64,000 bases of DNA from Octopus bimaculoides (lineage: Eukaryota): positions 62,624,538 to 62,688,537 of the forward strand of contig NC_068985.1 in assembly GCF_001194135.2 (NCBI RefSeq). The letters run 5' to 3'. How positions within the stretch are numbered: position 1 is the first letter of the stretch; each line of letters starts with the position of its first letter. Position numbers and translations under genes: made by a program. This document shows positions 30,688 to 59,559 of this stretch, piece by piece. The notes under the pieces are model-generated. The model was not told the origin of the DNA. It saw nothing but the letters and a program-made list of their open reading frames with translations, and did not search any database.

Positions 30688-30736
30688 TCATACTATAACT
30701 TCAAGATAAACAACATTCCTTGTCAAAGTTCTTTTT
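30688..30736 (-). CDS. Host gene, putative terminal coding exon (R)KRTLTRNVVYLEVIV*
   Basis: Acceptor T-tract-CTAG; phase 2 entry matches the AG left by the 32506 exon; TGA at 30688-30690; AATAAA at 30629-30634 (minus strand). Confidence 0.55.
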
Positions 30737-30999
30737 CTAGAAAAAAAAAAAAGCAAAATTATATGGTGACCTCTCACCTTATATACTTTGGCTGGCCAAT
30801 AATACAGTCATTATTACTGGAACTATGTATAATTTGCCTCGTACGGCATGGCCAATATGAGTTACAGCCCCATTTTCCCTCCCCTTGTCCCTCCCTCTAC
30901 CTCTAAATGTTTCTCCTGAAATAAGATATTATGGACAGCCAGACGGAGTTCAGTGTTCCTTTTATAATGTAAGACATAAGCTGATATAAGATAAGAAAA

Positions 31000-31210
31000 T
31001 AAGATTATATATATTATGCATGTCATGGCACTCCATCGGTTATGACAATGAGGATTCCATTTGATCCGATCAACGGAACAGCCTGCTAGTGAAATTAACA
31101 TGTAAGTGGCTGAGCACTCTGCAGACACATGTACCCTTAATGTAGTTCTCTTTGGAATACAGGTGCAACAGAAACAGGAAGAAAAGGTGAGAGAAAGTTG
31201 TGGTGAAAGA
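31000..31210. repeat. SINE-like interspersed repeat (family not assigned)
   Basis: GC-richer non-coding block in AT-rich intron; resembles octopus SINEs from memory only. Confidence 0.3.
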
Positions 31211-32011
31211 GTACAGCAGGGTTCACACCCAAATATTTTGAAAAATGAACCTGAAGATGTGTTGGTAGAATTATAAATCTGATGATTACATATATTCTGA
31301 TCTCCCAATACAGAAACGCGTGTAGTTCCTTTCTAATTATAATTTTAACTCAAGTAAGGGCTAATTAAGGTAGTATATTTTATACCCTGCTGTTGTACTG
31401 GTTTTATCCTCAAGTATTATTTCTTGATGTGCATATAAATACCATGAGTTTTCCATCAAAAATACTCATTATGTTCTTTTTGCATTATCTGAAATGGAAT
31501 ACCCAGAAATCTATTGATTGAAATCCCAATAATTGAACTATATATATATATATATATCCAAATTGAGGGAATGGAGCAGGTAAAATCCAAGCTACATATG
31601 TTTCCTAGCTAGCAGAACCTTGCAGTATAAGGTAATGTCTTTTTTTGTAATTATCATTTATACTTTGGCTAAGTAATAAAAAAATTTTAATGAATTAATT
31701 ACTTTTGGGGGAAATTAGATTTAAATCACATATATTATGAAGATAAAAAATTATGGTAATCTAAATTTTATTATGATAATAAATATATGATGAATAATCA
31801 ACAGCAGATAAAACAGTGAGAATCAATACAATGGCATACATATTCATTCTTAGCACATTCTGGCAAATTTGAATATGAATATGTTAGTTGTTATTGTATT
31901 TCGTCTCTTTAGAGATCACCTTTCAAACAATGTGTGTTGACAACACACTCAATACATCTCCATAGAAGGACTTTGAGGCACCAGTGGTTTGACCTGGTTG
32001 TGCCTCTTTGA

Positions 32012-32157
32012 GTTCAACTGGTACTTATTTTATTGACCCTGAAAGGAGGAAAGACAAAGTTGATCCCAGCAGTATTTGAACTCAGAACATAAGGATGGAG
32101 AAAATGCTGCTAAGAATTTTGCCCAGCATGCTAACAATTCTGCCAGTTTTCCACCTT
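32012..32157 (-). mobile_element. Nin-domain-like SINE
   Basis: Reverse complement of the TTTGCCTTTC..GGGGTC.ATAAAATAAGTACC domain also found at 32240, 33288 and 33675. Confidence 0.6.
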
Positions 32158-32239
32158 ATTGATCATTAATATTGACAGATAATCTATATTAATTGGTAAT
32201 TTAATATCTAGAAGAACTGATAATATGGACCTCTATCTA

Positions 32240-32432
32240 AGGTGGTGATCAGGCAAAATCATTAGCACACCAAGCAAAATGCTTAATGGCATTTTATCCA
32301 TCTTTACACTCTGGGTTCAAATCTGCTGAGGCTAACTTTGCCTTTCGGGGTCAAAAAAATAAGCACCAATTGAGTACTGAGGTCAATGCAATAGACTTCC
32401 CCCTCTCCAACATTGCTGGTCTCGTGCCATAA
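32240..32432 (+). mobile_element. Nin-domain-like SINE
   Basis: tRNA-like head (GGTTCAAATC B-box-like) followed by AACTTTGCCTTTCGGGGTC...ATAAGCACC. Confidence 0.6.
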
Positions 32433-32505
32433 TTTGAAATTAATATTGATCTCCATCTATATGAATTGATATTGTAGAAATGTCAAAGTTGAAAGTAATA
32501 TTTAC

Positions 32506-32623
32506 CTTTGTTTAGACACTTTTCTTTTATTTTTCCTAGTGTAATTGCTTCTGTTACATTCTGCACAGCCAATCTCTTCACACTCAGCATTCAGGTTAAT
32601 ATATAATTCATTTGGAGATAAAT
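32506..32623 (-). CDS. Host gene internal exon, 118 nt: (D)LSPNELYINLNAECEEIGCAECNRSNYTRKNKRKVSKQ(R)
   Basis: Acceptor TTTCATTTTCAG, donor AAG|GTAAAT; only the phase 1 frame is open, matching the upstream exon's phase 1 end. Confidence 0.75.
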
Positions 32624-33287
32624 CTGAAAATGAAACATAGAAAGTTAATTCATTTTATAGAATATCTCATATAAAAAGAGATTGTTTAAGGTTCACTTCT
32701 AAATAAAACACATTTCTTCTAATTCATAGTTAAAGTTTGAGAATCTTTGTCAAAACTCTCCATATTGGAAGTTACTAAGTACCATGCTTCTTCAGAAAAT
32801 AACCATTCCACTGCTACCATCTGCCAACTGTTGCTAGATTTAATTCAGGATAAGAAAGAATCCCAAAGATTTCTCTAATTACATAAATACAATTTTAAAT
32901 ATTTATGTGAAATAGATATAGCCAAGGTTTAAAGTCCTATCTTTAAAGATAGAACACTTAACTCTTGAGTATCCCATTTTCTACAACCAGCTTCAACAAG
33001 CACATCTACCTTTTTTATTTTCAGTTATACATTTTAAAACATGCACCCATACAATTTATGAGATAGCAGTCATGGCTAACAAACATCTGTCACAATCAAG
33101 AGAAAACAGACAATAGAAGACATAAAATAATTGAATATTACTGGATAATATTAATATTTTATGTAACAATGTGTATAGCATACAAACATAGAATGGTGCT
33201 AGTTGTAATATTTTATTACAAAGTTTCTCATGAGACATTGTGAGCTAAAAACACACAGCTCACTCATCTTAACTATATTGTAATATT

Positions 33288-33496
33288 CAAATTTTGGCAC
33301 AAGGTCAATAATTTTGGGGGAGGGTTAAGTCAATTACATTGACCCCAGTGCTCAACAGGTACTTATTCTTTCGACCCTGAATGGATGAAATACAAAGTTG
33401 ACCTCGGCAGAATTTGAACACAGAATGCAATGATATACAAAATACCACAAAGCATTTTGCTCTGTGTACAAACAATTCTGCCAGCTCACCACCTTT
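33288..33496 (-). mobile_element. Nin-domain-like SINE
   Basis: Inverted homolog of 32240-32432. Confidence 0.6.
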
Positions 33497-33674
33497 TAAC
33501 TATATTATGATATTGGATATCATAAACAATATCAATGATATTACAACACAAGAATGATAAAATAGCTAATCATAAAATATTTTAGATAAATCATTATGAT
33601 CAGATCATTAAAAATTATAATTTACTGGACTTTTATCCTCATCTTTAATGTTTTCAATATCATATCCACACAAA

Positions 33675-33838
33675 GATGTTTCATCAGTCTTCATATTCTA
33701 AGTTCAAATTCCACCAAGATCAACTTTGCCTTTCAGACTTTTGGGGTCGGTTAAATAAGTATCGGTTGAACACTCAGGTCGATATAATTGACTTCACCAT
33801 TCCCTCAAACTTGTGACCTTGTACCAAGATTTGAAACC
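33675..33838 (+). mobile_element. Nin-domain-like SINE
   Basis: AACTTTGCCTTTCAGACTTTTGGGGTCGGTTAAATAAGTATC domain. Confidence 0.6.
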
Positions 33839-34141
33839 AAAATTATATCTACACTAAGTTTAAATTGGTTTATCTCTGATCATAATCAAATGTTTTATTT
33901 TTGGAGACCTAACTAAATCGTGTAGATGTAAATATTGAAAATATTTCTAAAGATGAAGTTAATAGTCTTGAATATCAATAAATAAAATCAAATATTAATA
34001 ATAATATTTAACATACTGACATCCATCACTTCCAATAAAAGTTAGTATATTTTATGATGTAAGAATGATGTGAAAGCACTCTAGTTATAGAAGTGAAGAG
34101 AACAATGATGTTTCATATAGGGAAATAATGTTGTTTGGTAC

Positions 34142-34205
34142 CTTGTTGCATCTGCAGTTCTTGTTGTTGCAGATTTTGTCTTCTTTCACAACAAGCCTTG
34201 TCAAA
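34142..34205 (-). CDS. Host gene internal exon, 64 nt: FDKACCERRQNLQQQELQMQQ(D)
   Basis: Acceptor TTTCTGTTTGTTGTAG, donor AAG|GTACCA; phase 0 to 1 links the 41424 and 32623 exons in one open frame. Confidence 0.7.
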
Positions 34206-35441
34206 CTACAACAAACAGAAATTGTCAATTAGACACATTAGATACTAAAACTTGTAGAAAATGGCTATGGAGGTGAATAGAAGAGAGAGTAATGATAGAT
34301 GAGGAACCAGAATGGGTAGGTGGAGGGAGTATCAGTGTGATTAGAGTGGGTAAGAGTGTGGGATAGTGATATAGAGGTGAGAGGGTGGTGAACAGTAACT
34401 GAGATGAGTAATGCTAAAAGTGAATGATGGATGTCAATAACAAAAGGCCTGGAGGATGACACTTGCCCAAAGTACTGCACAGTATGTGTACCTGGGGGCT
34501 ATGACTTCAATCCTAGAAATGAAGAGGAAACAAGGCTCTTAGAGTTCTCTGATGCAAATGTTCTGATGACCTGCGACATGAACTTCAAGAAACCAGCCAA
34601 TCATCAGATCACCTACCAATCATGTGAGCACACAAGGCATTACAGAAAGTCGCTTGCTTCTCGGATGAGCAATGTATAACCTAACTTAGGTTAATAGCTA
34701 GTGACTTCAGATTAAGAGCTAAAAGGACTCAGAGACACAAACTACTTTGGAAAAGGAAGTTCTGGAAATTTAAAGATCCAGTGAACAGTCAGAAATTTAG
34801 GGATGTAAAAATTGAAGCATTTAACTCATAATTTCATCAGGACAACCTATAGAGGGCAACAGACCAAATCTGTGGCTAATACAATGTTCCAGTCAGACCA
34901 AGGGTGACATGAATATGGAACAGGGAAGCTGACAAAGCCATAAATGTAAAGAGACAGGCCTGGACAGACTGGAACAATGGAGTAGCAGAGAAATCAGAAG
35001 AGAAGCTAGCTGACAGGTCAATCTAGTAATGAAAGAAGTAGAAAGGAAGAAGTTTGCCAATGTTCTGACATAAGGATCAGAGGTAGGCATGAGGTTTTCT
35101 GGATTGCAAGACAGTGCTTGAGAAAATCATGAAGTTGTGGGAGAGAAGTGCATACAGTTGGATAATGATACACTTGCACTTAACAATTTTGAAAAGAAAG
35201 AGGCTACAATGGAAAACTACTAAATGTGGATAGTGCATCGGAGAAAGATAAATTTCCTACTGGACCAAACAGAGAAACCAGCTGAATTGACAACAGTATG
35301 ATAGACAAAGCAGTGAAGGATATGAAGGCAGGAAAAGCGTCTGGTCCATCAGGAATTATTGCCAAGATGATGTCACCTGTATAACTAATTAGGTTGTACA
35401 GGAAGGTATCATACCCAATAACTGATGTAGCAGAATTATAA

Positions 35442-37799
35442 CACTAGGTAACAAATTTCAATTTTTTTTTGTTACAGACATATAAACTACTGATTCCTAC
35501 TAAATTTCTGATGCTAATTTCAGATCTGATATCTAAATTTCTTTATCATGTGCAGATTTTGTATAACCAAAACCCCCTATTTTAAATTTTTTCTCACTCA
35601 CTCCTATTATGAAAGCCATCTAAGCAACTTTTCCATGCCACATTTTATGTTAAGCAATCAAACTTAAATAATTAGTGAATAGAGATGTCTTTCCTGCTTT
35701 TTCCAGCTTAGAACAGACAATGGAATTCTGCTGGCAGAGTTACCACCCCAGTGTCCAACCAGCCACCCAAAGTACATTAGTATTTTGTTGTTACTATCAA
35801 AAGGCAACTTCCTGTTCTTAAGTGAAACTTTGATATTTCCTCTTCTTTTGCCATGTGTAGGATGACAAACTCTCCTTTTACTGGAACCAACAATAATCTC
35901 CCATCATATTTAAGTTGAAATTACCTTGGTATTTGTTTTCCATAATTGAGATCTGTTAGTGGAAGCATTCACCATGCTCGTCACTCACAGCCCCAAGGTT
36001 GGCTGGGAAGAAGTCAAGATGAGAATCTAAAAAATCCATTTTCAAAGAAAACTCTGCATCCCATTTTTTCATAAGATTTAAGCATGTTTTCTATGAGTTC
36101 ATGGTGGTTTTCAGCTTCATGGTTTCCAAGAAAATTTTTGACAATTTCAACAAAATATGTCCATGCTCCTAGTTCATTCTCATTTAGATTAGATGGAAAC
36201 AATGAGTTGTGGAGAACGCTGTGCATTTGTAGTCCAGTGAAAACTCCAGCTTAGCATCTGTCAATATCCCTTTAAATATTGGAAACCACTACCTTAATGA
36301 TCCACACCCTACACAAATTTTTTTATAAAGCCAGTTATATGTGAAGTAGTGGAAGATGTACTTTCTGAGGGTCAATAAGTGCTGGGTGTTTCACATTTTC
36401 TTTACCAACAACATATTCTAGATGGCTGATCATATTTTTTGTTCTGGTCATCTCCGTTATTCTATAGACATGGCACAAAACTGTTATGATATTTTGCATC
36501 ATTGACTGAAGAGAAAAACTCAGTTGCAAATATTCCATGTATCATGTCTTTGTCTAATTTCTCGTCCATTTAGTTTTCGTTTAGTTTCCCATTTGCTCTG
36601 CTTTCATTTAACTTTTCTCCTTGTTGTATTCTTTCTGTTCAATCCTTGATACATACATGTTTTGTGTAGCCCAACAGTAACCCAAAAAGTAATGATACAA
36701 CTTTAGAGTCACCACAAATATGTGGTCCTTATATTTGATGAGTCTTAGCAGCAGTTCCATTGGTTCATAAGTCTCATTAAGGCCAGTGGCATATGCTACA
36801 GTAATACAGCTTTAAGGTCAGTTTTACTAGAGTCAATGAACGGTCTCCATTCTTTTGGATCATAGTGAAAGTCAATCCTTTCCATCAGACCACTGATGTG
36901 GCAGAAACAAAGGTTTACCTTTTGTAAGTAAAATGATGAAAACTGCAGATGGTGTTGGTAGAAATGGGAAACTTTGGTATTTGGCTGGAGAAAATTCCAT
37001 TCTTGAATCTGGGAACCAAGCAACTCTGCCTTTTCTTTTGGTAATTCCAAATTGTGCAGCACTAAGTCATTTAACATCCACTTGACTTAACAAATGTGAG
37101 GAACTAGTTGCATCTGGAACATATACACTATATTTCCCTATTTCTATATCACTAGCAGAATCTCCAGTTGAACTGCTGTCTTCAAAAACCACTCTACTTG
37201 ACTTTCACGTAGCAACTGACTGTTGAGCTGTTACTATGCTCTTGACTCAGTGTTTCCAGTTTGGGATAAATTTAATTGATCAAAATTGTTAGAATTTGTA
37301 TATAGTTGGCGAATAAAAATTGCTTTAACCTTAAAGGGCAAGTTTCATATCAAAACCAGCACCATCCAAACGTGGTCGATGCCAGGTCCACCTGACTGGC
37401 TCCTGTGCCGGTGGCACATAAAAAGCACCAATGAATCATGCCCAATGCGAATATTGCCTGACTGGCTCCTGTGCTGGTGGCATGTAAAAAGCACCCACTA
37501 CACTCTCAGTGGTTAGCGTTAGGAAGGGCATCCAGCTGTAGAAACATTGCCAAATCAGATTGGTGCAGCCACTGGCTCTCCAGACCTCAGTCAAACTGTC
37601 TAACCCATGCCAGCATGGAAAATGAACATTAAACAATGATGATGATGATGATGATTTAGATGCAGTAGGAAAGTTTACTAAGTGATTTGCATTTTAAACA
37701 AAATTTAGACATGATAGAAAAATCTAATTATAGAGTTGAAATCAGCATACCAAAATTAGCTAGGAACACCTACTGTAACAAAACCTTTGTTGCCTAGTG
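35442..37799 (-). mobile_element. CMC-superfamily DNA transposon, probably Chapaev-like, decayed
   Basis: TIRs CACTAGG(T/C)AACAAA at both ends; apparent AA duplication at 35440-35441 and 37800-37801; transposase remnants LNDLV..LELPKEKAELLGS, EWRPFIDSSK..LKAVLL, HLPLLHI, RYQG...MMGDYCW. Family name is from recall, not a search. Confidence 0.75.
37340..37657 (+). mobile_element. (GAT)n-tailed retroposon inserted in the DNA transposon
   Basis: GGTTAGCGTTAGGAAGGGCATCCAGCTGTAGAAAC core and a (GAT)n tail. Confidence 0.75.
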
Positions 37800-41423: not shown

Positions 41424-41566
41424 CTTTGGTTTTGTGGCTACTAAACTGACATGGGATGGTATTGGAGGTAAATTCACATAACATGATGAAGAAACATCTT
41501 CATTGTTTTTTAACTTTTCCATATTCTGATCAAAATTTCCAAATTTTAGTGGTTTCTCATCATAAT
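41424..41566 (-). CDS. Host gene internal exon, 143 nt: YDEKPLKFGNFDQNMEKLKNNEDVSSSCYVNLPPIPSHVSLVATKPK
   Basis: Acceptor TTCTTTTATTTAG, donor AAG|GTAAAT; phase 1 to 0; lies within ORF 41406-41603. Confidence 0.75.
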
Positions 41567-42129: not shown

Positions 42130-45100
42130 CGAGGATGTGCAAATTTTACCTGCAAGTCAAATGTTGGCATGGGGAGGACGGTACAAACTGCCAGTTTACT
42201 CACCAGAGACACCACTAAAACTGCAGGGGCCTCAAGGAGAAATACTTCCCAGAGGAAAGGTACCAATCATCTCCAAAAAGGAACTATACAGATACAGTGT
42301 GCTCTTCAGATGTTATATGAAAGGCAGCAGCTGAGCAAAAGTCTTTTTTCTGCATGGCGCAAAAGATTGTGCACTAGCTGACCTGGCTACATCAAGCGCA
42401 ATTACAGAACCTTGCCCACCACTGCACAAGACAACCACCATCAACAGACATGGGATGGCCTCCCCTAACACCAACACAGTCGTCGCGTAAATATTTCTAC
42501 TAAATATTGGAAGCTTGTTGCATCACAACAAAAACAAAATCTTTTCCTGAGAGACCTTGCTGCATGCAATCAAGCCCTATGCATAGCACTCATGGAAACT
42601 CATCTGAGGCCTGATATAGAGGATGCAGAAGTACAAGTACCAAAATATACCATACTGCGAACAGACAGAACGGAAAGGAGCCATGGTGGAGTTGCTGCAT
42701 ACATCCGTGAGGACCTCACACACCAGGTCCTACTGTCATATTCAAATTCCGTTATGTCTCAAGCTACTGCTATCTAGCACCTTCGGATGATCTCTACTCA
42801 ACCACTACACAACTGCTACTCGACTGCTACACAACACTCCTACCACGGCCAGATTACCTCTATTTATATGTCTTGGGAGATCCTACTTCTTCACCTGGGG
42901 GCTTCGACACAACACGGCTCCCTTTTGAGTTTTGTTTTTTCTTTTCAAAAAATAAACGAATTTATCAATTTTATTTCCTCGGTGAGAAACTGGCATATCT
43001 TTTTCTCTTAGCATTTATTTCCATCATTTCTGTAGGTTTTCTCTTCCTACTTGACCTACGTGTCGGTTCCGCTTTCACTTGTAGTTCTGGGACCTCGAAC
43101 AAATCATACCATGTATCCATTTGTTCCTCTCGCCTCTCTTGGTTTTTGGTATATCTTTTTTTTTAATTGGTTTAAATGCCTTCTGTGTTCATATTTCGGT
43201 CCTTTTAATGTGTACATCACATTACCCAGATGTCCCGTTATACTTCCTTGTTCCCAGTCCTGTTTTCCATTATTATATACTCTAAAATACACTTTGTCAC
43301 CTGTTTCCTGCTCGACAACCATTTGTCAAAAATAGAACGAATTTTTCTGGAAAACATCAAATCTGCGGGTGACCTATCCGACTCTGCATTTGGATTCGGT
43401 GTTATTCTATACACCTGCAAAAACTTTGTCATCTTTGTATCTTCAAAGGTTTCCCGTCTGGTCTTCCTTAAAGCTCTCTTGAATGTGTCGACGAATCTTT
43501 CCACTAACCCATTTGACTTTGGGTGGTATGGCGGAGTTAACACATGCTTCATCTGAACTGACTTACAGAATCTTTTGAACTCCTTCGCTGTGAATTGTGT
43601 CCCATTATCTGACACGATAGTATCTGGCACTCCATACCGAGCGAACAGTTCTTCCAAGAAGTCAATCGTCACACTTGTGGTTGGCCTTGAACATTTACAC
43701 ACTTCAGGCCATTTGGAATAGCTATCCACCACAATGATATAATAGGAGCCATTTAATGGTCCTGCGAAATCCACATGTAGTCTAGACCATGCTGAATCCG
43801 TTTTTGGCCAAGGCTGTAGCTGCACTGGAAGCGCCCTTGCTGCCATCGTGCATCCCCTACACTGTTGTACCAGTCTCTCAATTTGCTTGTCCATATTTGG
43901 CCAATAAGGCTCTATATCCGGACAATCCCCGGATGTCCAACATGAAAATCTTTTAATACTCTGTTTTGCAGTACTTCATTTATTACCACTCCTTGCTCAT
44001 ATAATAATACCTCATCACATACTGAATAGTACTTTGAACCTACGTCCCGCTCATTTATATTTTTTGTGTTACACAAAATATTTTTAATCTTATTTATAAA
44101 CCTTTCATTTTCCGATTTCAATTTAATTTCTTCCAGCATTACTGGCAAATCACATACTACATTGCACAAAATGTTCTTCAGTTCCTTTTCTAGTTTTAAC
44201 AATGCAATCACCGTGTCTTCAAAAAGTTCCTCATATTAAGGAATCAGCCTAGACAACCTGTCTGCATGTCCCATTTTCATTGATGGCAAAAACTCCATCT
44301 GAAAATTGTAGTTCAACAGAGTAGTTCCCCAGCGTTGTAAGCGGTTTGCTGAGTGCGTGGGGATACCCTTTTTCGAACCGAAAATAGACAATAACGGTCG
44401 GTGATCCGTTTGCAGTGTAAACTTCTTCCCATGTAAGAATTTATGGAATTTTTTAACTGCGAAGATTAATGATAACGCCTCTTTTTCAATCTGGCTGTAG
44501 TTTCTTTCCGCTGGGACAGAACTTTTGATGCATATGCAATAGCTTTGATTTTACCATCATTAAATTTATGCAATATAACCGCTCCTATACCATATTCACT
44601 GGCGTCCGGTGCTACAATTATTTTCAATTTTGGGTTGAAATGAGTTAATGATAACTCTGAAGTTAACCNNNNNNNNNNNNNNNNNNNNNNNNNNNNNNNN
44701 NNNNNNNNNNNNNNNNNNNNNNNNNNNNNNNNNNNNNNNNNNNNNNNNNNNNNNNNNNNNNNNNNNNNNNNNNNNNNNNNNNNNNNNNNNNNNNNNNNNN
44801 NNNNNNNNNNNNNNNNNNNNNNNNNNNNNNNNNNNNNNNNNNNNNNNNNNNNNNNNNNNNNNNNNNNNNNNNNNNNNNNNNNNNNNNNNNNNNNNNNNNN
44901 NNNNNNNNNNNNNNNNNNNNNNNNNNNNNNNNNNNNNNNNNNNNNNNNNNNNNNNNNNNNNNNNNNNNNNNNNNNNNNNNNNNNNNNNNNNNNNNNNNNN
45001 NNNNNNNNNNNNNNNNNNNNNNNNNNNNNNNNNNNNNNNNNNNNNNNNNNNNNNNNNNNNNNNNNNNNNNNNNNNNNNNNNNNNNNNNNNNNNNNNNNNN

Positions 45101-48100
45101 NNNNNNNNNNNNNNNNNNNNNNNNNNNNNNNNNNNNNNNNNNNNNNNNNNNAATACTTTAGCACATTCTTCATCTACCTGTAATTGGAGGTAGGCCTCAG
45201 ACAAATCCAGCTTGGAAAAAATTTTCCCACCATTGCACTTGGCAAATACTTCTTCTGGGTTTGGAAGTGGATAATTATACTTTTTTAAACAGTCATTCAG
45301 CCCAGTTGAGAAGTCAGCACATACTTTTACCTCGTTATTCTTCTTTTTTATATATACCGTAGGAGCCACCCACTCTGAGTAATCCACTTTTTCAATTACT
45401 TCCAGGTCTTCCAATCGTTTTAATTCCTTCTCTGTTTGATTCAACGCCGCAAACAGTACATTCCTTTTCGGTTTAAACACAAGCACCACATTTTCTTTTA
45501 ACTCAAACTTTACTTTAATTTTTTCACACATACCGAGCTCTTTCGAAAAGATATCCGAGTACATCCTTTTCAGTTTTAATTTCATTTTTTCCGATGCTTT
45601 CTCTGACACGGGCTGTGACGCATTCACCTTGTTACACAATGTATTCAGTGATAGATCCCACAGGTCGAATCTTTCCATTAAATCTGTCCCAAACAGATTC
45701 ATTGTATTTTTTTCTATCATTAGTTTACATTTCCGTGTCCTGTTTTTAAGTTTCATTTCTGTTGAGGTTTCACCCAAGAATCGAACTTGTTCTCCTGACA
45801 CACGATGGGCTATCCTAGTAGTCTTTTTATGCAACGGCCTGCCTATTTTACTCGATGTTGCCATATTTATTATTGATACGTCTGAACCAGTATCTAATTG
45901 CATTTTGGTCTGAAACCCATTTATTTCTACCGACACAAATTTTCAGTTTTGTCTGGTATAATTTACTTTTGTTGAGTAGACTTTCTTTTGTTTTACCGTT
46001 TTCTTTGACTGGCATTTTGTCTGTATATGCTCAATTTTACCACACTTAAAACAGGTTTTATCTTTAAAGGGGCAATCTTTCCTCAAATGTTGCTCTCCGC
46101 AACCATAGCACCGTTTTGAATTAAAATTTTTCCTTCTTTGTATACTTTCTTTACACATTTGTACATTATTCTTGTCTTCTGTTTTCCTTGTATCATCTCG
46201 AAGGTTTATTATTTGTTGNNNNNNNNNNNNNNNNNNNNNNNNNNNNNNNNNNNNNNNNNNNNNNNNNNNNNNNNNNNNNNNNNNNNNNNNNNNNNNNNNN
46301 NNNNNNNNNNNNNNNNNNNNNNNNNNNNNNNNNNNNNNNNNNNNNNNNNNNNNNNNNNNNNNNNNNNNNNNNNNNNNNNNNNNNNNNNNNNNNNNNNNNN
46401 NNNNNNNNNNNNNNNNNNNNNNNNNNNNNNNNNNNNNNNNNNNNNNNNNNNNNNNNNNNNNNNNNNNNNNNNNNNNNNNNNNNNNNNNNNNNNNNNNNNN
46501 NNNNNNNNNNNNNNNNNNNNNNNNNNNNNNNNNNNNNNNNNNNNNNNNNNNNNNNNNNNNNNNNNNNNNNNNNNNNNNNNNNNNNNNNNNNNNNNNNNNN
46601 NNNNNNNNNNNNNNNNNNNNNNNNNNNNNNNNNNNNNNNNNNNNNNNNNNNNNNNNNNNNNNNNNNNNNNNNNNNNNNNNNNNNNNNNNNNNNNNNNNNN
46701 NNNNNNNNNNNNNNNNNNNNNNNNNNNNNNNNNNNNNNNNNNNNNNNNNNNNNNNNNNNNNNNNNNNNNNNNNNNNNNNNNNNNNNNNNNNNNNNNNNNN
46801 NNNNNNNNNNNNNNNNNNNNNNNNNNNNNNNNNNNNNNNNNNNNNNNNNNNNNNNNNNNNNNNNNNNNNNNNNNNNNNNNNNNNNNNNNNNNNNNNNNNN
46901 NNNNNNNNNNNNNNNNNNNNNNNNNNNNNNNNNNNNNNNNNNNNNNNNNNNNNNNNNNNNNNNNNNNNNNNNNNNNNNNNCTTTCGCAAAAGGAGTCTTA
47001 CCTTCCTTTCACTAGACCATCCCTTGCATTCCTCTCGCAATATATCTTCGTATCATCTGTAATATGCCACAAAAGTAGTTCCTTCATCTGGATTGTACTG
47101 AAATTCTTCGATGGAATTTGCAACACCATCTGCTGAAAATGATTCTGTCATATTTCTTGACTGCAGTAACAATTCTGTTAACTTCTGTAGTTGCTGATGC
47201 TCTTGTTGTTTCACTTGCTGCTCTTGTTTCACAACTGCTTTCAGTAACTCTTCCATTTTTGGTGCTATTAGAAACCTTGTCGCCACTGTTATATCGCAAT
47301 ACTACACAGTGGTTGTGTGAGCTGCAAATCCTCGTCGCCACTGTTATGTCTCAACCTACTGCTATCTAGCACCTTCGGATGATCTCTACTCAACCGCTAC
47401 ACAACTGCTACTCGACCGCTACTCAACACTCCTACCACGGCCAGACTACTTCTATTTATATGTCTTGGGAGATCCTTACTTCTTCGCCTGGGGGCATCAA
47501 CACAACAAATTCAATATGTGACATTCTAGTTGCATACATAAGATAACACAATATAGTTATATGCAATACATATCACCTACCAGATGCTCCAAACCATGCA
47601 GGCAAGTTTGAAGATTGCCACACAAGAATAAAAGAAACCCTCATGAAATTGGAACATCACGTGAATGTGTTTCTTATGGGTGATTTCAACTTACCCAGTG
47701 TCAAATGGCCCGAAGGTCTCATGCTCTCAGGAATGACTCCTTGCAAACAAGTACAGGTGGAGTCCCTGCTCAACCTCACCAATGCCCTATTCATGGAGCA
47801 AATTGTGCTCTGACCAACCAGGGTGAATAACATATTGGATCTCTGCTTCACAAACAATATGGACATCGTTCATGATGTGAAAGTGACACCGACATAAGTT
47901 TTGGATCACAACATAATAGAGCTGTCTATGTATAGACCAAAAGTAACCAGAAACATACAGCCTAAAGGAAGCACCCAAAATCTCTCCATTCTGAATTTGC
48001 ACAAAGCAGACTGGAAATCGTTCCAAAAAGAGAATCCTCAGACAGGACTGGCTGAAATGTCCTTCGACACCAGACATACCAATGTCTGGTGTTGAGGGAC

Positions 48101-49300
48101 AAAGTAGAATATTTCATGTCAGTTATGCAAACCATATGCCATAGATATGTCCCAGAGCACAAGGCCAACACAAAACGGAACAAGATTCAAAGGGAGAGGA
48201 AGGTCCTCATGAGGCAATGGACAAAAGTTGCAAATCGCTTCAACCAACATCAAAAAAGTAGTGAAAGGTCACGCCTAAAAACAACACTGATGGAGATAGA
48301 AAACAGCCTGCAACAATCCTATGTGAAAGAGAGAGCAAACAAAGAAGACTTCTTTCATTATGCCAAAGAAACAACCTCAATACGCTGCAAAACAGAACCC
48401 CGTCTTCCAGAATGATGGCTCCCTCACAGATAACCCAACCAAGATCAGTGAGGTACTGAACGACCAGTTCAAAAGTGTCTTTACCACCCCATACAACATA
48501 GACAAGTAAACAAGCCAGTGGATTTCTTTGCCACCTCACCTATAACCAGCAAGCCAGTTACAATGGATTACATTGACATTGGGGAACAAGAAAATACTGA
48601 CCATAGATAAGGTGGACGCAGGCTCAACTGCTAGCCCTGATGGCTTCCCAGTAGTCCCCCTCAAATCGTGTAAACATGCCCTGGCAAAATCACTACAGAT
48701 TCCCTTCCAGAGCTCTCTTGCAAATGGCAAGCTACCAAGTAAACTGAAGGAGGGAATAATATGCCCAATCCATAAAGGAGGAAGCAGAGCTGATGTCAAA
48801 ACCTATAGGTCTATCTCTCTTACTTCACACATCAGCAAAGTCATTGAACAAATAGTTAGAGGGAAACTAATTGCATTCCTTGAAGAAAATGACTTGCTGA
48901 GTGATACCCAGCATGGCTTTCAACCAGGTAGGAGCTGCCTATCCAGCTCCTACAGTACTATGACTGGGTGTTGAGGCAGTTACTCAACAACTCAAATGTG
49001 GACATAATATACCTTGACTTTGCAAAAGCTTTTGATAAAGTTGATCATGGTATGATATGCCACAAACTGCATGATCTCAGCATAGCTGAAAAACTCGGAA
49101 CTGGATAATAGTGGCCCTCAGCTGCCCAGATAGCCACCCTTGCTAGCTATGCAAACGATATGAAAGTCTCACAGAAAATACAAAACCCTAGCGATGTTGC
49201 AGTAGGAGCTGGACTCAATTTACAGATGGGCTAAGAACAATAATATCCAGTTAAATGCTGGAAAGTTTCAAGCCCTTTGCTACCATCACCCAAAACTGAA
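42130..49300 (+). mobile_element. CR1-like LINE (ORF1 end, AP endonuclease, RT) split by a Gypsy insertion
   Basis: ALMETHL, RTDR..RSHGGVAAYIR; rejoined LSYSNS|ICDILVAYI; MGDFNLP, NILDLCFTN, YRSISLTSHISK, QHGF, YLDFAKAFDKVDH. Confidence 0.85.
42750..47507 (-). mobile_element. Full-length Ty3/Gypsy element with 165/166-bp LTRs and a 5-bp TSD (AATTC)
   Basis: LTRs 42750-42914 and 47342-47507; AATTC at 42745-42749 and 47508-47512; PBS TGGCGACGAGGAT; PPT-like AAAAGGGAG; gag, CCHC, protease LDTGS, RT, RNase H (DASEYGIG) and integrase (HVDFAGP, SDNG, SNGLVERFVDTFKRAL). Confidence 0.95.
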
Positions 49301-49956: not shown

Positions 49957-50280
49957 CATATCCTCTGGACAAAGACGAGTTGCGAACATTATTCTCCTTC
50001 TAACTACTTTTACTCTTTATTCTTCTATTTTACTACTTTATTCTTCTATTTTATTCCTTATAAACTGTGAATTTTATTCCTTGTAAACTGTAAATTTTCC
50101 CAGTCTAAAATATTCATACCTTGTCTCTGATGATGGAATTTCCAGTGTACAGATATGCTAGCCAACTACTTGGGTAATCCTAGAAACAGCCGTAAGACTT
50201 CAAATTCACCTTACCCTAATAAAATTATTCTAAATGACTTGAGATACTCATTCTGCTTTAGTTTTGATTTTTCCTCTAAT
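49957..50280 (+). repeat. 324-bp direct repeat, copy 1 (pLTR/retrozyme-like, carries a hammerhead)
   Basis: Colinear with 52378-52701 at a constant offset of 2421. Confidence 0.85.
50123..50198 (+). ncRNA. Type I hammerhead ribozyme motif (family B, copy 1)
   Basis: GTCT / CTGATGA / long imperfect stem II / GAAAC-AGCC-GTA / AGAC. Stem I is GTCT:AGAC; predicted cleavage after GUA at 50194. Confidence 0.75.
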
Positions 50281-50779
50281 ATATATATATATATATATAT
50301 AAACATAATTAAGGGATCAGCAAACATTTGCTTCACCATATACCGAAGTTCAGAAATAGCAGCTAAAAAAGCTGCTATTTCTGAACTTCGGTATATGGTG
50401 AAGCAAATGTTTNNNNNNNNNNNNNNNNNNNNNNNNNNNNNNNNNNNNNNNNNNNNNNNNNNNNNNNNNNNNNNNNNNNNNNNNNNNNNNNNNNNNNNNN
50501 NNNNNNNNNNNNNNNNNNNNNNNNNNNNNNNNNNNNNNNNNNNNNNNNNNNNNNNNNNNNNNNNNNNNNNNNNNNNNNNNNNNNNNNNNNNNNNNNNNNN
50601 NNNNNNNNNNNNNNNNNNNNNNNNNNNNNNNNNNNNNNNNNNNNNNNNNNNNNNNNNNNNNNNNNNNNNNNNNNNNNNNNNNNNNNNNNNNNNNNNNNNN
50701 NNNNNNNNNNNNNNNNNNNNNNNNNNNNNNNNNNNNNNNNNNNNNNNNNNNNNNNNNNNNNNNNNNNNNNNNNNNNNNN

Positions 50780-52370
50780 TCTAGGACTCTTGACAGGAAG
50801 AGATCCAGTTTTGATTTGAAAACACCTACATCCACTTTATGTAGGTCCCTCAGGCTCTTTGGAAGAATATTAAAAAGCTGTGGGCCCCTGAAATCCAGGC
50901 TTCATGCTTCAGTACCTGGCCCTGAAGCTTGAAGGCATTGCTGGGATCTTTGGTACTGTGCAGTGTCGACCTGTCCTGGCATTGTGTAGCTTTCAATGCC
51001 AAAATTTGGCACAATCCCTCCAGGATCTTCCAGATGTATATTATTGCACATGCCTCCCACCTTCACTCCAGGGAGTAGAGTCTTAGCTGTTTCAGCCTTT
51101 CCCAGTAGCTGATCCTCTTTGTGAAGCTTTGCTGGATTGCTTCAAGATCTGCTGTTAATTTACCACTGTGGGGTGACCATAGCTGGGAGCAGTAGTCCAG
51201 GTGGCTGAGGACGAATGTCCTCCAGCGGACCATCATGGCTTCCTTCTCTCTGGTTCTGAAGGTTCTCAGGTTCCAGCTAACCAGCCGTCTGCACTTTGTC
51301 ACCATCTTGGTAATGTGCATTCGGAAAGAGGTATCATCACTCATGTCAATATCCAGGTCTCACACTGATTTAAGTTCTGGGATTGTAATCCCCTCAGGCC
51401 AGTGTATCCTGTGAGTTTTACATTCAGTTTTGGGTGATGGTAGAAAAGGGCTTGGAACTTTCCAGCATTTAACTGGATATTATTGTTCTCAGCCCATCTG
51501 TAAATTGAGTCCAACTCCTACTGCAACATCGCTAGAGTTTTGTATTTTCTGTGAGACTTTCATATCGTCTGCATAGCTAGCAAGGGTGGCTATCCGGGCA
51601 TCTGAGGGCATATCTGAGAGGGCCACTATGAAAAGCTGTGGTCCTAAGACAGTGCCCTGTGGAATACCACTCATTATTTGTGTTTTCTTTGAGGTGGCTC
51701 AGAAAGTCACGTAACTACTCTCCAAGTTTTCCAGCTATGCTGAGATCACGCAGTTTGTGGCATATTAAACCATGATCAACTTTATCAAAAGATTTGCAAA
51801 GTCAAGGTATATTATGTCCACATTTGAGTTGTTGAGTAACTGCCTCAACACCCAGTCATAGTACTGTAGAAGCTGGATAGGCAGCTCCTACCTGGTTGAA
51901 AGCCATGCTGGGTATCACTCAGCAAGTCATTTTCTTCAAGGAATGCAATTAGTTTCCCTCTAACTATTTGTTCAATGACTTTGCTGATGCGTGAAGTAAG
52001 AGAGATAGACCTATAGGTTTTGGCATCTGCTCTGCTTCCTCCTTTATGGATTGGGCATATTATCCCCTACTTCAGTTTGCTTGTATCTTGCCATTTGCAA
52101 GAGAGCTCTGGAAGAGAATCTGTAGTGGTTTTGCCAGGGCACGTTTACACGATTTGAGGGGGACTACTGGGAAGCCAACAGGGCCAGCAGTTGAGCCTGC
52201 ATCCACCTCATCTATGGCTAGTATTGTCTTCTTCCCCAATGTCAATGTAATCCATTGTAACTGCCTTGCTGGTTATAGGTGAGGTGGCAAAGAAATCCAC
52301 TGGCTCATTTACTTGTCTATGTTGTACGGAGTGATAAACTGGTCGTTCAGTACCTCACTGATCTTGGTTG
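50780..52370 (-). mobile_element. Inverted copy of the CR1-like RT region (duplicates about 48437-49300 and continues 3' of it)
   Basis: SGIPQGTVLGPQLF, SYADDMK, LSHLDYCSQLWSP; reverse-complement match to the plus-strand copy, including shared frameshifts. Confidence 0.88.
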
Positions 52371-52377: not shown

Positions 52378-52701
52378 CATATCCTCTGGAAAAAGATGAG
52401 TTGTGAACATTATTCTTCTTCTAACTACTTTTACTCTTTATTCTTCTATTTTACTACTTTATTCTTCTATTTTATTCCTTATAAACTGTGAATTTTATTC
52501 CTTGTAAACTGTAAATTTTCCCAGTCTAAAATATTCGTTCCTTGTCTCTGATGATGGAATTCCCAGTGCACAGACATGCTAGCCAACCACTTGGGTAATC
52601 CTAGAAACAACTGTAAGACTTCAAATTCACCTTACCCTAATAAAATTATTCTAAATGACTTGAGATACTCATTCTGCCTTGATTTTGATTTTTCCTCTAA
52701 T
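52378..52701 (+). repeat. 324-bp direct repeat, copy 2
   Basis: Colinear with 49957-50280 at a constant offset of 2421. Confidence 0.85.
52544..52619 (+). ncRNA. Type I hammerhead ribozyme motif (family B, copy 2)
   Basis: GTCT / CTGATGA / TGGAATTCCCAGTG...CACTTGGGTAATCCTA / GAAAC-AACT-GTA / AGAC. The two-copy consensus for stem III is the palindrome ACAGCTGT. Confidence 0.75.
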
Positions 52702-53263: not shown

Positions 53264-53273
53264 NNNNNNNNNN

Positions 53274-53694: not shown

Positions 53695-53769
53695 AATCCA
53701 GCTGATAAAGACTAATCAAATTTACGATGACAAACGTATTTGAAGAGTCCGAAACCTAGGTACTGGATT
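53695..53769 (+). ncRNA. Type I hammerhead motif (family C, copy 2)
   Basis: AATCCAG / CTGATAA / AGACT..TCAAAT...ATTTGA..AGTCC / GAAAC-CTAG-GTA / CTGGATT. Stem I is a perfect 7 bp and stem III is the palindrome ACCTAGGT; core G8 has changed to A. Confidence 0.75.
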
Positions 53770-55989
53770 ATCCGATTCTGGGTTGTCCATTTATATAATG
53801 TTCTTCCAAGAGGTAAGACAAATTTTTTTTTTCTGTTTGCTGCTCTCACACGTCTTTGCCAGGATGTACACATTGAAGTTTTACTATAGTGTCGTAAATG
53901 TATTGACTGCTATTTCCAGTAAACATTGCTTTGTTGTACCATTCCTCTATATTTATATATATATATATGATACATATAAAACATATTAGTAAAGTTAATT
54001 TTAACCACATTTGTTGGTCAATTCACTCAAATGTCTTGAGATTAATTTACTGCTAATTTTACAAATGTTTGTTACCTTTTGTTGAACCAACAGACTGGGC
54101 CAACTTTGCCTTTAGCATTTTATTTTTAACTGGTACCTCTTGTTCTTCAGAAACTATTTTACTGAAATGAGTTAAACATGAAAGATTAAAATTACAGATT
54201 TGTAGGAAATTAAACAGAAACACTTATGAAAGAACTTACAAACCTTTTCTTATTATTTCAACTAACAAGTCAATATTTTAGAGATATTTTTCTTCTTTGT
54301 TTTGACAGCAATAATGAAACTTCTACAGCTGACACTATCACTTGACTTCGAATATTCTAGATTTTGGTGAGATGATTACAACTGTTTAAACATTATTTTC
54401 CTAATGGATAAATTTCTAATACATTATCCTTCCATGCATCTCAACATTGTATTGAGAAAAACTTAACCTATTCTGATTATTAACCCCAATCCTTCTATAA
54501 TCTACTTGTAAATTTTTATGACTAGTACACTTGTGACTTTCTACAGTCTACATCATATTTTTTGTGATCTCATACAGTTTGCTGCTAGATTTTTGTGATA
54601 TCAACTGCTTTTTCAAGACATTTCTCTTAATATACATCATCCATTTTCACTAACTATGATGTATGTTTTCCTTATAATTCTCAAGACAATGTTTTAGATC
54701 TCAAGCAGTTTCTGAACCTATTGTATTCAGTTTACCTTGTGCACCTGACAAACTCTATTTAATCCAATATATCTGTATATTTAGTCCAATAGATTTGTAA
54801 ATTTAGCCCAACAGATTTGCATACATATATTTGAATCAATAGATTTCAGCCATAGTCATCTCCTCTAGTTTAGCCCACATTGATCCATAATTATCATCTA
54901 TTCCTACTCAAGCCACATCTTATTCAAAGCCAGTCTATCCAAGCCAAGCCATATCCCATTTAAAGCCAATCCATCTACACTGAATCAGTGAAGGCTGTGG
55001 ATATTTAGAGTCGTAGCCTACATTAATATGTTCAATTATCTGCCATAGCAATCAATTCCCCATTCAAAACATACTTATTTTGACCACTAATCAATGAATT
55101 GACAGTAAATGTCATAAGGTAATAAATAAATAAATAAATGCAGAGAAAAAGTAAAAAATATATATTTAAAGTTCATGTCAAAGTCCAATGTCAGAGTCTC
55201 CTGGCGGTGGATACAACTGAAATAAGCTGGAAGGGGCTGAGATTAGTGGACATAAAAAATATATATATAAAAATAGCTGAAGGCTTATAGAAACAATAAT
55301 ATACACAAGCCACAAAACTGTAAATTAGAAGTAAAGAAGACTGGTTTTATAGTGAAAGTGGCAACTCACATAGCAATGTGGCAATTTACATAGCAATGTA
55401 GCAATTTACTTAGCTATGGTTAATATATTTAATCAACATGTACAAGTCATTCAAAGAAATAACCAATACAACTCTTACATTTCAAGTAATTCTAATTAAT
55501 ATTCAATTGTGAAATATTAATGAAAAGATTTCCACTCAAACCACTGAATATAAACAGTGTTATTTGTTTTTGCTTTATTCAAGCTTTTGTAAACATGTTT
55601 GTTGAAATTAAGTAAAAATCTATCATCAATTGATCCATAGGATTTTAGATTTTATTTGTTTGTAATCTCATGAACTTCCATGGAGATGTTTAGTTTCATT
55701 TTCCTGTTTTGGTTACATTTTATTTTCATACAACTAAAATATTTGGTACAAACAATCATCTAAGAGAATATATATTCAAACCCTGAAAGAATTATTCAGA
55801 CATTTATATATTTTGCTTTTATCAGTCTAAAGTATCCTACTTGAATATATAATATATGCATCAAGGAATTCAAAGTATTCATAATAAAAACTTTAATTAA
55901 GTTCAGATTTGGAAATAATCTACAGCTATTCATATTTTAGATTAATTAAAATTCTAAAAAATGTCAATAAATATTTCCTTGTTACTGAC

Positions 55990-56174
55990 CAAGATTTTTT
56001 ATTGGAACTTTTCTTGGTATTCTTTGGCTTTGACATTTCTTCAAGTGGAATTTTCACATAATGTTTCTCAACTTCATTCTGGTTCTTTAGGCTGTCTCTT
56101 TCCTCGAGTGATCTTTGGTTTTCTTTCTTTGATATTAAATCCTCTGGCACCAATTCTGGGTTACATTTGATTTC
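55990..56174 (-). CDS. Host gene exon, Lys/Glu-rich cytoplasmic segment: EIKCNPELVPEDLISKKENQRSLEERDSLKNQNEVEKHYVKIPLEEMSKPKNTKKSSNKKS
   Basis: Acceptor CCTTGGCAG at phase 0 matches the TM exon's phase 0 end; only one frame is open. The donor is uncertain (TG|GTCAGT chosen; TCA|GTAACA is possible). Confidence 0.6.
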
Positions 56175-56319
56175 CTGCCAAGGTTTTAATGAATTAATAC
56201 CAAGATTCCATTAAGATGGAAGTAATTAAGACAAAAAGGAAATCTCACTTGACTTGCTAGAAAGAGCATCTAAATCTCCCTCATAGCACACCCTACTGTC
56301 TTAAGAAAATAGAAGGATA

Positions 56320-56560
56320 TGTAGTACTAAATTTTAATATATAAAGCTGAAGTTGTGTGTCTGTGTGTAGCCTTTTTAAAAGTTTATAGAAATCCACATT
56401 TTCCACTTTTTCGTGAAAATTTTTACATCAATGGAATTTTCTCGATGTGAACTTTCCAGTGCAGTAATTAGATTTTTTAAAATTCCGTTTACTTTGTGTG
56501 ATTTAAGGGAGATTTGGCTTTTATTTCTAGCAACTTTTATATTTCTTCCATTCTATCTGT
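56320..56560 (+). repeat. Possible non-autonomous Helitron-like repeat start
   Basis: ACTAAATTTTAATATATAAAGCTGAAGTTGTGTGTCTG resembles Helitron/HINE 5' ends; no 3' hairpin or CTRR end was confirmed. Confidence 0.25.
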
Positions 56561-57529
56561 ACCGGTGTTCTTACACATCAATCATGCGCTCAACATATAA
56601 TATAGAGGGTAAGAGTAAAAGAGAGAGTGAGAGAAAGTGATACATACAAAGTCAAAGATTAACTTGGTTTAAAACAATTCTTCCCTTTCTATTCTTTCAT
56701 TCTACCTACCTTTTCACTCTTACTTCATTCTTCTTCCTCTCTCCCATTTAATAGCTTTCTTCTATCCCTCTACCTCTAACTATCCACGTGACCTGGTCAT
56801 CTGGTGCTTATCGCCATTTCTCTGCTTCGACCATTATCAGTGCACATCTCTTTTTCCTCGCTTCACTTTCTCATTTCCTACACACACCAGCATCACTGTT
56901 CTTTCTTCCAAGGAATCTGGAGCTCTTAGCTTCCTTTTGCCGAAGTTGCAAAGATAATTTGTAACTAGACTGAATAAGGAATACCCCATTTCACGCGTTC
57001 ATGTTTTCGTTACATTGTCTGTCTGCATGTTCAGCGTCCTTGTCTCCTCTTAGTATTTTTTACAGATTTTTCGTAACATAGAGATGTAAAAACACACACA
57101 ACCACACATACGTGATCTGTGACAACAACATACACATAAATACATACACACATCAACATTATAGATATAAGATTTAGTTTGTGTATGTTTCTTATATAAA
57201 CACACACATGCATTGCTATTTTATAACTGTCCTTTGTTCTCCCTTCCTCTCTTTCTCTCTCTTCATTGCTCCCATTCTCTATTCCTTTCTCCCCCCCCTC
57301 TCTCTCTTTCTCTCTCCCTCTTCTCTCTCACTCTCTCAAACGCACACACGCACACGTACACACAAGCATTCACTACAATATAACTAGATCTTACCTTACT
57401 ACATGTTCGTCAATGTTTTGTAAATATACAAACTACGGAGCTTATGTAGACAGGACAACACATTGCAAATCAGTGAACTTCATTAGAAATGTGAAAACTA
57501 CCTACCCTGCCATCTGTTATAACTTTTTG

Positions 57530-57638
57530 TGACACGTAAAAGCACCCACTACACTCTCTGAGTGGTTGGCGTTAGGAAGGGCATCCAGCTCATCCAGCTG
57601 TAGAAACACTGCCAAATCAGATTGGAGCCTGGTGTAGC
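57530..57638 (+). mobile_element. (GAT)n-tailed retroposon fragment running into a gap
   Basis: GTGGTTGGCGTTAGGAAGGGCATCCAGCT core, with a small CATCCAGCT duplication. Confidence 0.7.
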
Positions 57639-59371
57639 NNNNNNNNNNNNNNNNNNNNNNNNNNNNNNNNNNNNNNNNNNNNNNNNNNNNNNNNNNNNNN
57701 NNNNNNNNNNNNNNNNNNNNNNNNNNNNNNNNNNNNNNNNNNNNNNNNNNNNNNNNNNNNNNNNNNNNNNNNNNNNNNNNNNNNNNNNNNNNNNNNNNNN
57801 NNNNNNNNNNNNNNNNNNNNNNNNNNNNNNNNNNNNNNNNNNNNNNNNNNNNNNNNNNNNNNNNNNNNNNNNNNNNNNNNNNNNNNNNNNNNNNNNNNNN
57901 NNNNNNNNNNNNNNNNNNNNNNNNNNNNNNNNNNNNNNNNNNNNNNNNNNNNNNNNNNNNNNNNNNNNNNNNNNNNNNNNNNNNNNNNNNNNNNNNNNNN
58001 NNNNNNNNNNNNNNNNNNNNNNNNNNNNNNNNNNNNNNNNNNNNNNNNNNNNNNNNNNNNNNNNNNNNNNNNNNNNNNNNNNNNNNNNNNNNNNNNNNNN
58101 NNNNNNNNNNNNNNNNNNNNNNNNNNNNNNNNNNNNNNNNNNNNNNNNNNNNNNNNNNNNNNNNNNNNNNNNNNNNNNNNNNNNNNNNNNNNNNNNNNNN
58201 NNNNNNNNNNNNNNNNNNNNNNNNNNNNNNNNNNNNNNNNNNNNNNNNNNNNNNNNNNNNNNNNNNNNNNNNNNNNNNNNNNNNNNNNNNNNNNNNNNNN
58301 NNNNNNNNNNNNNNNNNNNNNNNNNNNNNNNNNNNNNNNNNNNNNNNNNNNNNNNNNNNNNNNNNNNNNNNNNNNNNNNNNNNNNNNNNNNNNNNNNNNN
58401 NNNNNNNNNNNNNNNNNNNNNNCAGAAATTGCCGTCCTAGCTCCTGCGAAAAGGGATTATCCTGCTATGTATAATCAGGGCAGCGCAAAAAGTTGTTTTG
58501 CACACGCATTTGTATAGCCAATTAGACGGATGAAATTTATGTACACTTAATAATGTTATGCAAAACAGCCTTCAGACTTTCCCTATTAATTTCGTCGTCT
58601 TTTGAATTATGAACATATTTACATCATAAGGGTTTTTTCGTTGTAAGGCTTTCTTTTTTAGTTGATTTTCACCTAGCAAGACTTATCGTAGATGGCGTAA
58701 TAAGTCACACCCGGACAATGTCGGGTTATACTGCTAGTACAGTATACATGAAGGGGAAAATAGCAACGTCATGGTAGTACTGATTGTCACAGATCAGTCT
58801 GGGTTAATATTTATTTGCTGTTGATAGGATGGGCTTCAATGACAACATATTTATGTATATATTCATTCTCTGCAAATTTTTTCCCTGAACAATTTCTTCC
58901 TTGTGTAGAATCAATGACGATTTTTCACCTCTTTCATTCTCCACCCTGTATTCATTATAAGCTGCATTACATAACCTCATTGTATCTCTCACATAAAATT
59001 AGTAATTCTTTGATAAAATGTACATATCCAGGAATGTAAGACACTTTGGAGATCAAGCTAAGAAATGAAGGTTAATGTAAATATTACAAAAATCTTCCAT
59101 CCTTGAAGATGGGCTTTAAAAGTTCAATTAATTATAATCTTAAATTCTTTGACATAATGTAAAAAACTATAATTTAGTACTTTAATTGAAAACAAGATTA
59201 TCAGAAAATTCCAAACATTTGTTAGAGATTTTAGTCTAATGGCATCACAGGAATCTTCAGGATATTTGAATGTTGGAATTGAACTTTTAGGTGTTTATCT
59301 CTGGTCTAAACTATTTCCTCTGTTTTCATACTCTGAGCCCAATAAAAACATAATAAATATTTAAAAAATAC

Positions 59372-59559
59372 CTGTAATGAAGAAGCAAGAGAGGAGTTGA
59401 TAGGTTTTACTTCTTGAATCTTTAGAGGTGGGCGTCGGAAGCATTTAAAGAAGATAAACAGAACACACCACATGAAAAGGAGAACTACAGCAACTGATCC
59501 AAGAACAACTCCAATGATCCAGTTCTCAGAATATTTTCCATCAGGAGTTTTAAGGTAGG
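59372..59559 (-). CDS. Host gene transmembrane exon, 188 nt: YLKTPDGKYSENWIIGVVLGSVAVVLLFMWCVLFIFFKCFRRPPLKIQEVKPINSSLASSLQ
   Basis: Acceptor TTGTTTACAG, donor CAG|GTATTT; a roughly 24-residue hydrophobic helix followed by KCFRR (positive-inside rule); phase 1 to 0. Confidence 0.8.

Follow-up and report, generated by a model that had tools for sequence, protein, structure and literature searches.

A 64,000-nt window of the Octopus bimaculoides genome (NC_068985.1, positions 62,624,538 to 62,688,537) contains, scattered among transposons, a series of small exon-like segments on the minus strand that encode a transmembrane (TM) helix followed by the motifs KCFRR, SCYVNL and LYINL. Which gene do these segments belong to, and what kind of protein does it encode? 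An earlier note, made from the sequence alone, joined six such segments between 30688 and 59559 into an unannotated-looking single-pass receptor of the immune, adhesion or phagocytic class, ending in VVYLEV, a sequence that resembles an immunoreceptor tyrosine-based inhibitory motif (ITIM). We find that the exons in this range are very probably the middle part (TM and cytoplasmic) of LOC106878674, an octopus member of the KIAA1549/UPF0606 family. The nine exons in the window, once spliced, encode 360 residues that are identical to residues 135-494 of the LOC106878674 protein XP_014783445.2 (UniProt A0A0L8G8G3; model P0044), labelled uncharacterised since 2015. The multi-exon minus-strand gene is thus real. 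Nor is it without annotation: RefSeq and UniProt have listed it since the 2015 octopus genome, and Pfam has a curated entry for its family.

The window corresponds to CM046605.1 (GCA_001194135.2) in reverse complement, and the two have their N gaps in common. It is AT-rich (37% GC), with ten N runs and many retroelement reading frames. The part of the gene that it holds encodes the TM helix and the first ∼320 residues of the tail in nine small exons, which are separated by introns of 0.7-21 kb that are, as had been noted, full of retrotransposons. Outside the window lie two exons that precede the TM exon, on one side, and the final three exons of the gene, on the other. No exons 5' of the TM exon were found in 59560-64000. 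The ectodomain exons had been expected past 59559, and upstream extension places them beyond the end of the window (window-equivalent ∼75975-77723 and further).

An exhaustive HMMER search of 1.84 billion representative sequences identified an O. vulgaris model (P0002, E 4e-40), together with short relatives of the TM exon. Mapped back on the window, P0002 matches the SCYVNL and LYINL exons at 96-97.5% identity, discloses an intermediate exon (34205-34142, 100%), and runs on from the LYINL exon into 11393-11339 and 10683-10553. A search with P0002 returned the O. sinensis RefSeq protein of LOC115212170 and O. bimaculoides proteins, and a cluster listing added XP_014783445.2 and A0A0L8G8G3. A word-indexed protein search with four joined exons gave no match in an incomplete index, which also missed P0003 and P0009, members of the query alignment of the TM profile.

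Could the segments be chance open frames in transposon-rich DNA? Each strand of the window has 13-18 loci with exon-like open segments between an AG and a GT, and the six-frame translation holds 12 hydrophobic 21-mers. Because both are common in this DNA, statistics alone could not decide whether the exons are real. A chance origin is nevertheless next to impossible, considering that the spliced product matches a RefSeq protein at every residue, that it is 96% identical without indels to an orthologue from an independently assembled species, and that the TM exon is kept across phyla with the same splice positions. This orthologue, O. sinensis LOC115212170 (XP_036358606.1 and XP_036358607.1, 1864-1901 residues), is a single locus. 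Over the 360 in-window residues it differs at 13 (96.4% identity). The exons are not copies of any window-internal repeat.

Exons and their junctions

From the sequence alone, the segments 59559-59372, 56174-55990, 41566-41424, 32623-32506 and 30736-30688 were recovered, the limits of the range being the first base after an acceptor (59559) and the last base of a TGA stop (30688). Five of the six exons originally claimed are real, namely the first four of these and 34205-34142, all with AG/GT borders and 100% identity to XP_014783445.2; the sixth, 30736-30688, is false, as discussed below. KCFRR (59432-59446), SCYVNL (41469-41486) and LYINL (32592-32606) are all located on the minus strand and are all present in the annotated protein (Table 1).

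The TM exon begins with 2 nt of a split codon, ends in phase 0, and encodes 13 extracellular residues, the helix WIIGVVLGSVAVVLLFMWCVLFIFF, the stop-transfer sequence KCFRR and 20 cytoplasmic residues. Phases agree at its junction with exon 56174-55990 and also where the LYINL exon would join the proposed terminal exon, and they clash at 55990/41566, which confirms the one out-of-phase junction reported previously. The clash arises because an 86-nt exon (length 2 mod 3) was missed. Indeed, the O. sinensis protein has 29 extra residues between exon 56174-55990 and the SCYVNL exon, which map to 54161-54076, and this exon restores the frame. Exon 56174-55990, which is hydrophilic, has 59/61 residues identical in O. 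sinensis, and the SCYVNL exon 46/48 in both O. sinensis and O. vulgaris. A further candidate exon at 56299-56249 (51 nt, SRVCYEGDLDALSSKS) was rejected, being in no gene model.

Table 1. Exons of LOC106878674 and other features mapped in the window
Feature	Position	Strand	Sequence, borders and basis
TM coding exon, 188 nt	59372..59559	-	AG/GT borders; identical to XP_014783445.2 residues 134-196
Coding exon, 185 nt	55990..56174	-	EIKCNPELVPED...HYVKIPLEEMSKPKNTKKSSNKKS; phase 0 in, 2 extra nt out; 100% identical to P0044
Coding exon, 86 nt	54076..54161	-	(C)KIVSEEQEVPVKNKMLKAKLAQSVGSTK; tblastn with XP_036358607.1; borders tttcag/gtaaca; 100% identical to P0044
Coding exon with SCYVNL, 143 nt	41424..41566	-	DYDEKPLKFGNFDQNMEKLKNNEDVSSSCYVNLPPIPSHVSLVATKPK; AG/GT borders; identical to XP_014783445.2
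Coding exon, 64 nt	34142..34205	-	FDKACCERRQNLQQQELQMQQ; 100% identical in three Octopus species
Coding exon with LYINL, 118 nt	32506..32623	-	DLSPNELYINLNAECEEIGCAECNRSNYTRKNKRKVSKQ(R); AG/GT borders; identical to XP_014783445.2
Coding exon, 55 nt	11339..11393	-	(R)KCNLKHASDVNSFKESSL; true partner of the LYINL exon over a 21.1-kb intron
Coding exon, 131 nt	10553..10683	-	NELYDDDKLWRRQPDTLQQTCVKMHNLLDDAFQLISMNLPQQN(L); P0002 mapping; identical to XP_014783445.2
Coding exon, 111 nt	7348..7458	-	KNISSGDQSNFPRRNINEKQMYQHHKKSIAEQVLIN(R); cassette exon, in O. sinensis isoform X1, absent from X2
Assembly gap	57639..58422		Intron between TM exon and 56174-55990; no coding sequence lost
Long terminal repeat (LTR) retrotransposon, intronic	42751..47476	-	gag zinc knuckle, aspartic protease, reverse transcriptase (RT)/RNase H, integrase; Pfam rve, gag-asp_proteas, zf-CCHC

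Family, architecture and transmembrane helix

The full-length orthologue has matches to no Pfam family other than PF12877 (KIAA1549/UPF0606), whose curated gathering cut-off is 24 bits. This profile scores 48.5 bits on P0044 (E 6e-13, residues 16-164) and 59 bits on the octopus model P0041; a Pfam scan of the in-window peptide alone finds no family. A profile of the TM exon retrieved 36 relatives, 16 of them with PF12877, and a separate Pfam scan confirmed 8 at 24.3-42.6 bits. When the TM-exon alignment was compared by hhalign with PF12877-positive sequences, the match had a probability of 99.4% (E 2.6e-21). The TM exon contains the TM/juxtamembrane motif of the family, LWIIGxVxG...Y/F-K-C.

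The TM segment is the strongest of the 12 hydrophobic stretches in the six frames, and no other of them has a basic cluster behind it. Its helix (59441-59521, minus strand) hardly varies between the arthropod-like and the cephalopod sequences of this poorly understood family: a WIIGxVxG sequence of GxxxG type is followed by W, F and the juxtamembrane KC, the invariant columns of the TM-exon alignment being W, I, I, G, V, G, W, F and C. This conservation is far above what a plain anchor needs, which indicates a specific role for the helix. Judged from the residues conserved, the chances are about even that the helix makes a specific helix-helix contact, by self-association or with a partner, and palmitoylation at the juxtamembrane Cys is possible. 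Of a 20-kb locus in a distant genome (L001), only the TM exon can be aligned with the window, as the sole block conserved within ±10 kb, and both splice sites are at the same positions; no homologues of the tail exons were found in this contig. Many arthropod-like exon fragments turn V-initial and non-conserved ∼20-25 residues after the helix, which fits a GT donor and suggests that the intron position after the TM helix is old.

A type I single-pass topology, as the earlier note had it, is predicted: the protein has one strong hydrophobic segment followed by KCFRR, and the O. sinensis model begins with a signal peptide (MVSSDDIFKTSQLLIIIFWIIFNSQVQC). The following 1156 residues contain 27% Ser+Thr, and the ectodomain has 2 Cys. 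The membrane-proximal PF12877 region, which is putatively SEA-like, precedes the TM helix, and its profile match is limited to positions 101-280. A basic RKKR sequence ends 82 residues before the TM motif, outside the window (L002 10001-10237), and the cytoplasmic tail has ∼560 residues. O. sinensis LOC115212170 has the same exon order and both YxN motifs (YVN and YIN); it is annotated as one gene, whereas the O. bimaculoides sequence is annotated as two.

Human KIAA1549, whose normal function is largely unexplored, is a type I protein. Its signal peptide is followed by an ectodomain that is rich in Ser/Thr and O-mannosylated, three SEA-like domains that include a furin site (RMWR1211), the TM helix (residues 1299-1319) and a cytoplasmic domain that is phosphorylated (PMC13570299; bioRxiv 10.1101/2025.08.18.670743). 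POMT1/2-dependent O-mannosylation of the ectodomain is known for the human protein only (PMC13570299). Human KIAA1549 and its paralogue KIAA1549L share with the octopus protein the type I single-pass topology, the signal peptide, the very long Ser/Thr-rich ectodomain and the PF12877 membrane-proximal domain. A basic convertase-type site, putative in octopus, lies 82 residues before the TM segment there and 88 in human (RMWR1211 to residue 1299; PMC13570299), and the tails are of ∼560 and ∼630 residues, respectively. Unlike its human counterpart, the octopus tail shows no detectable similarity to the profile, and the SEA-like region matches only in part. MUC1-type mucins also have an ectodomain with O-glycosylation, a juxtamembrane module of SEA type, one TM segment and a signalling tail with tyrosine motifs (likeness drawn in PMC13570299). 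The likeness is one of layout. The cleavage differs, being autocatalytic in the SEA domain of MUC1 and due to a furin-like protease in KIAA1549.

By analogy with human KIAA1549, the octopus ectodomain may be heavily O-glycosylated in the endoplasmic reticulum, and the protein may mature in the same way, including a predicted furin-type cleavage. It would then stand at the cell surface as a membrane mucin. The long tail would be phosphorylated and could act as a docking/signalling or scaffolding platform, possibly freed by further cleavage.

Several points weigh against reading the locus as a KIAA1549-type gene with such a protein product. The tail shows no match to PF12877 positions 290-676, whether P0044, P0041 or the tail alone is scanned, and nothing matches past profile position 280. 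Family membership therefore rests on the juxtamembrane ectodomain and the TM helix, and the octopus tail is either lineage-specific or too divergent to match. The exon joins are predicted from gene models and sequence, and only the O. sinensis gene suggests that LOC106878674 is continuous with LOC106873933, which encodes the ectodomain. The glycosylation, furin cleavage and signalling steps are all predictions transferred from human work.

The proposed terminal exon and the tail tyrosines

The receptor proposal placed the end of the protein in an exon at 30736-30688 on the minus strand (KRTLTRNVVYLEVIV followed by a stop, reading ...VVYLEVIV at its end), which would supply a C-terminal ITIM-like motif. 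The string VVYLEV is indeed present (30697-30714, minus strand), but we rejected the exon, which is intronic and in none of five models from O. bimaculoides, O. sinensis and O. vulgaris (P0041, P0044, P0045, P0046 and P0002). Instead, the LYINL exon is joined to 11393, 21 kb away, and the real tail continues for ∼340 residues past it, through 11393-11339, 10683-10553 and 7458-7348 and then beyond the window start. This 21-kb intron holds 53 acceptor-like sites after which the in-phase frame stays open for at least 8 codons before it stops, and 6 of the resulting peptides have an ITIM-like motif, so that chance explains the VVYLEV exon. As a caution for the method, phase-chaining of short open frames in AT-rich introns easily yields a false terminal exon with a plausible signalling motif.

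The same segment might be a genuine alternative 3' terminal exon, giving a short-tailed isoform that ends in VVYLEVIV, and it does have what such an exon would need, namely a strong polypyrimidine tract before an AG and a frame that continues that of the LYINL exon. We consider this very improbable, because no isoform retrieved in the three Octopus species uses it and because the 53 in-phase sites in the same intron are comparable. Nor can acceptor scores tell true from false here (true exons -5.1 to 4.3, false terminal exon 5.7); splice-site scores were dropped as evidence. The broader proposal, an unannotated immune, adhesion or phagocytic receptor with a short tail that ends in VVYLEV and signals through SH2 proteins (Grb2 at YxN, SHP at the ITIM), draws on elements that are real, i.e. 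the TM helix with KCFRR, SCYVNL and LYINL. SCYVNL also fits the consensus [IVLS]xYxx[LVI] and is the one ITIM-like motif in the real tail. In this it resembles the ITIM inhibitory receptors with Ig or C-type-lectin ectodomains, which are likewise single-pass. We nevertheless regard this proposal as extremely unlikely. The gene is annotated, VVYLEV is in no model and such decoys are frequent, the ectodomain is mucin-like and SEA-like (PF12877) rather than Ig, lectin or EGF, and no ITAM, ITSM or NPxY motif was found in the tail. The YxN count is only marginally over expectation for an Asn-rich tail: four (YVN, YIN, YKN and YNN) among 15 tail Tyr, compared with ∼1.4 expected at 9.3% Asn, a binomial estimate of ∼0.05 before correction for the several motif types considered. 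The number of YxN/ITIM-like motifs, as counted in the predicted tail, is not clearly above chance.

For the KIAA1549/UPF0606 protein that we favor, it is very unlikely that Grb2 docks at phosphorylated tyrosines of YVNL and YINL in the tail. The tail of MUC1 has a Grb2-binding YTNP. The in-window YVN and YIN are identical in O. sinensis; little can be read from such agreement within Octopus, given an overall identity of 96% in the sequence compared. If Grb2 did dock there, a mucin-like protein would natively feed Ras-MAPK signalling, which would provide a physiological link to the pathway activated by the human KIAA1549::BRAF fusion.

Two similar tyrosine contexts occur in the tail, SPNELYINL (32592-32609) and SLNELYDDD (10672-10683), both on the minus strand with NELY in common, possibly a repeated short linear motif. 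In another frame, 30710-30736 (minus strand) reads KKNFDKECC, which is like KPKFDKACC at the junction into exon 34205-34142 (E 0.28); this likeness is due either to chance or to a faint trace of local duplication.

Gene models, assembly gaps and intronic transposons

A by-product of modest use is that annotation errors were exposed in two species. The O. bimaculoides annotation seems to split one gene into LOC106873933 (ectodomain; P0042) and LOC106878674. The 3' end of LOC106873933 reads ...FQHFWIVT and then unrelated residues, and the start ATG of LOC106878674 falls in a stretch that is intronic in O. sinensis (MDNLTVNYYDAIISVTV/IKVRSD; L002 10001-10237, window-equivalent 77723-77487). Across this split point, the single O. 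sinensis protein reads ...FQHFWIVT/IIKVRSD. The two O. vulgaris models retrieved (GCA_951406725.2) both look faulty. P0002 skips the SEA-like exons and the TM exon together with the next two, and it runs into intron sequence just before the SCYVNL exon. In P0043, uDENN/DENN and reprolysin/ADAMTS domains are fused to the ectodomain and TM region of KIAA1549 type.

All five assembly gaps within the range are intronic, one between the TM exon and 56174-55990 and four between 54161-54076 and 41566-41424. Since the annotated protein contains the 360 in-window residues without interruption, and these are collinear without indels with the independently assembled O. sinensis, the gaps conceal no exon, and the order and orientation of the exons are supported. 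The gaps persist in GCA_001194135.2, so that their lengths in the window may differ from the true ones. Two of them (44669-45151 and 46219-46980) lie inside the LTR retrotransposon listed in Table 1, whose 134-nt direct repeats (42751-42884 and 47343-47476) are 96% identical. Another gap, 50413-50779, is flanked by identical tandem-repeat blocks at 50008-50098 and 52429-52519, 2421 nt apart.

The 21-kb intron contains, on the plus strand at 22077-26548, a long series of open reading frames (ORFs) that by eye resemble gag-like, protease, RT, RNase H and integrase sequences, adjoined by an antisense RT ORF of 310 residues (26788-27720, minus strand, also by eye). A transposon-like ORF of 155 residues at 18324-18791 (plus strand) is a UniRef entry, so that a transposon fragment inside an intron of the gene has apparently been annotated as a protein. 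The same RT of long interspersed nuclear element type occurs twice in opposite orientation, at 48089-48974 (plus strand) and 51063-51983 (minus strand), with KVIEQIVRGKLIAFLEENDLLSDTQHGFQP in common. Short interspersed repeats translating ...GAFMCHQHEGQSGGTGNGHAQNGVFYVP..., with tandem units of 62-67 nt, recur at 28400-30430 and 63831-63974 and are probably an abundant octopus family of short interspersed nuclear elements.

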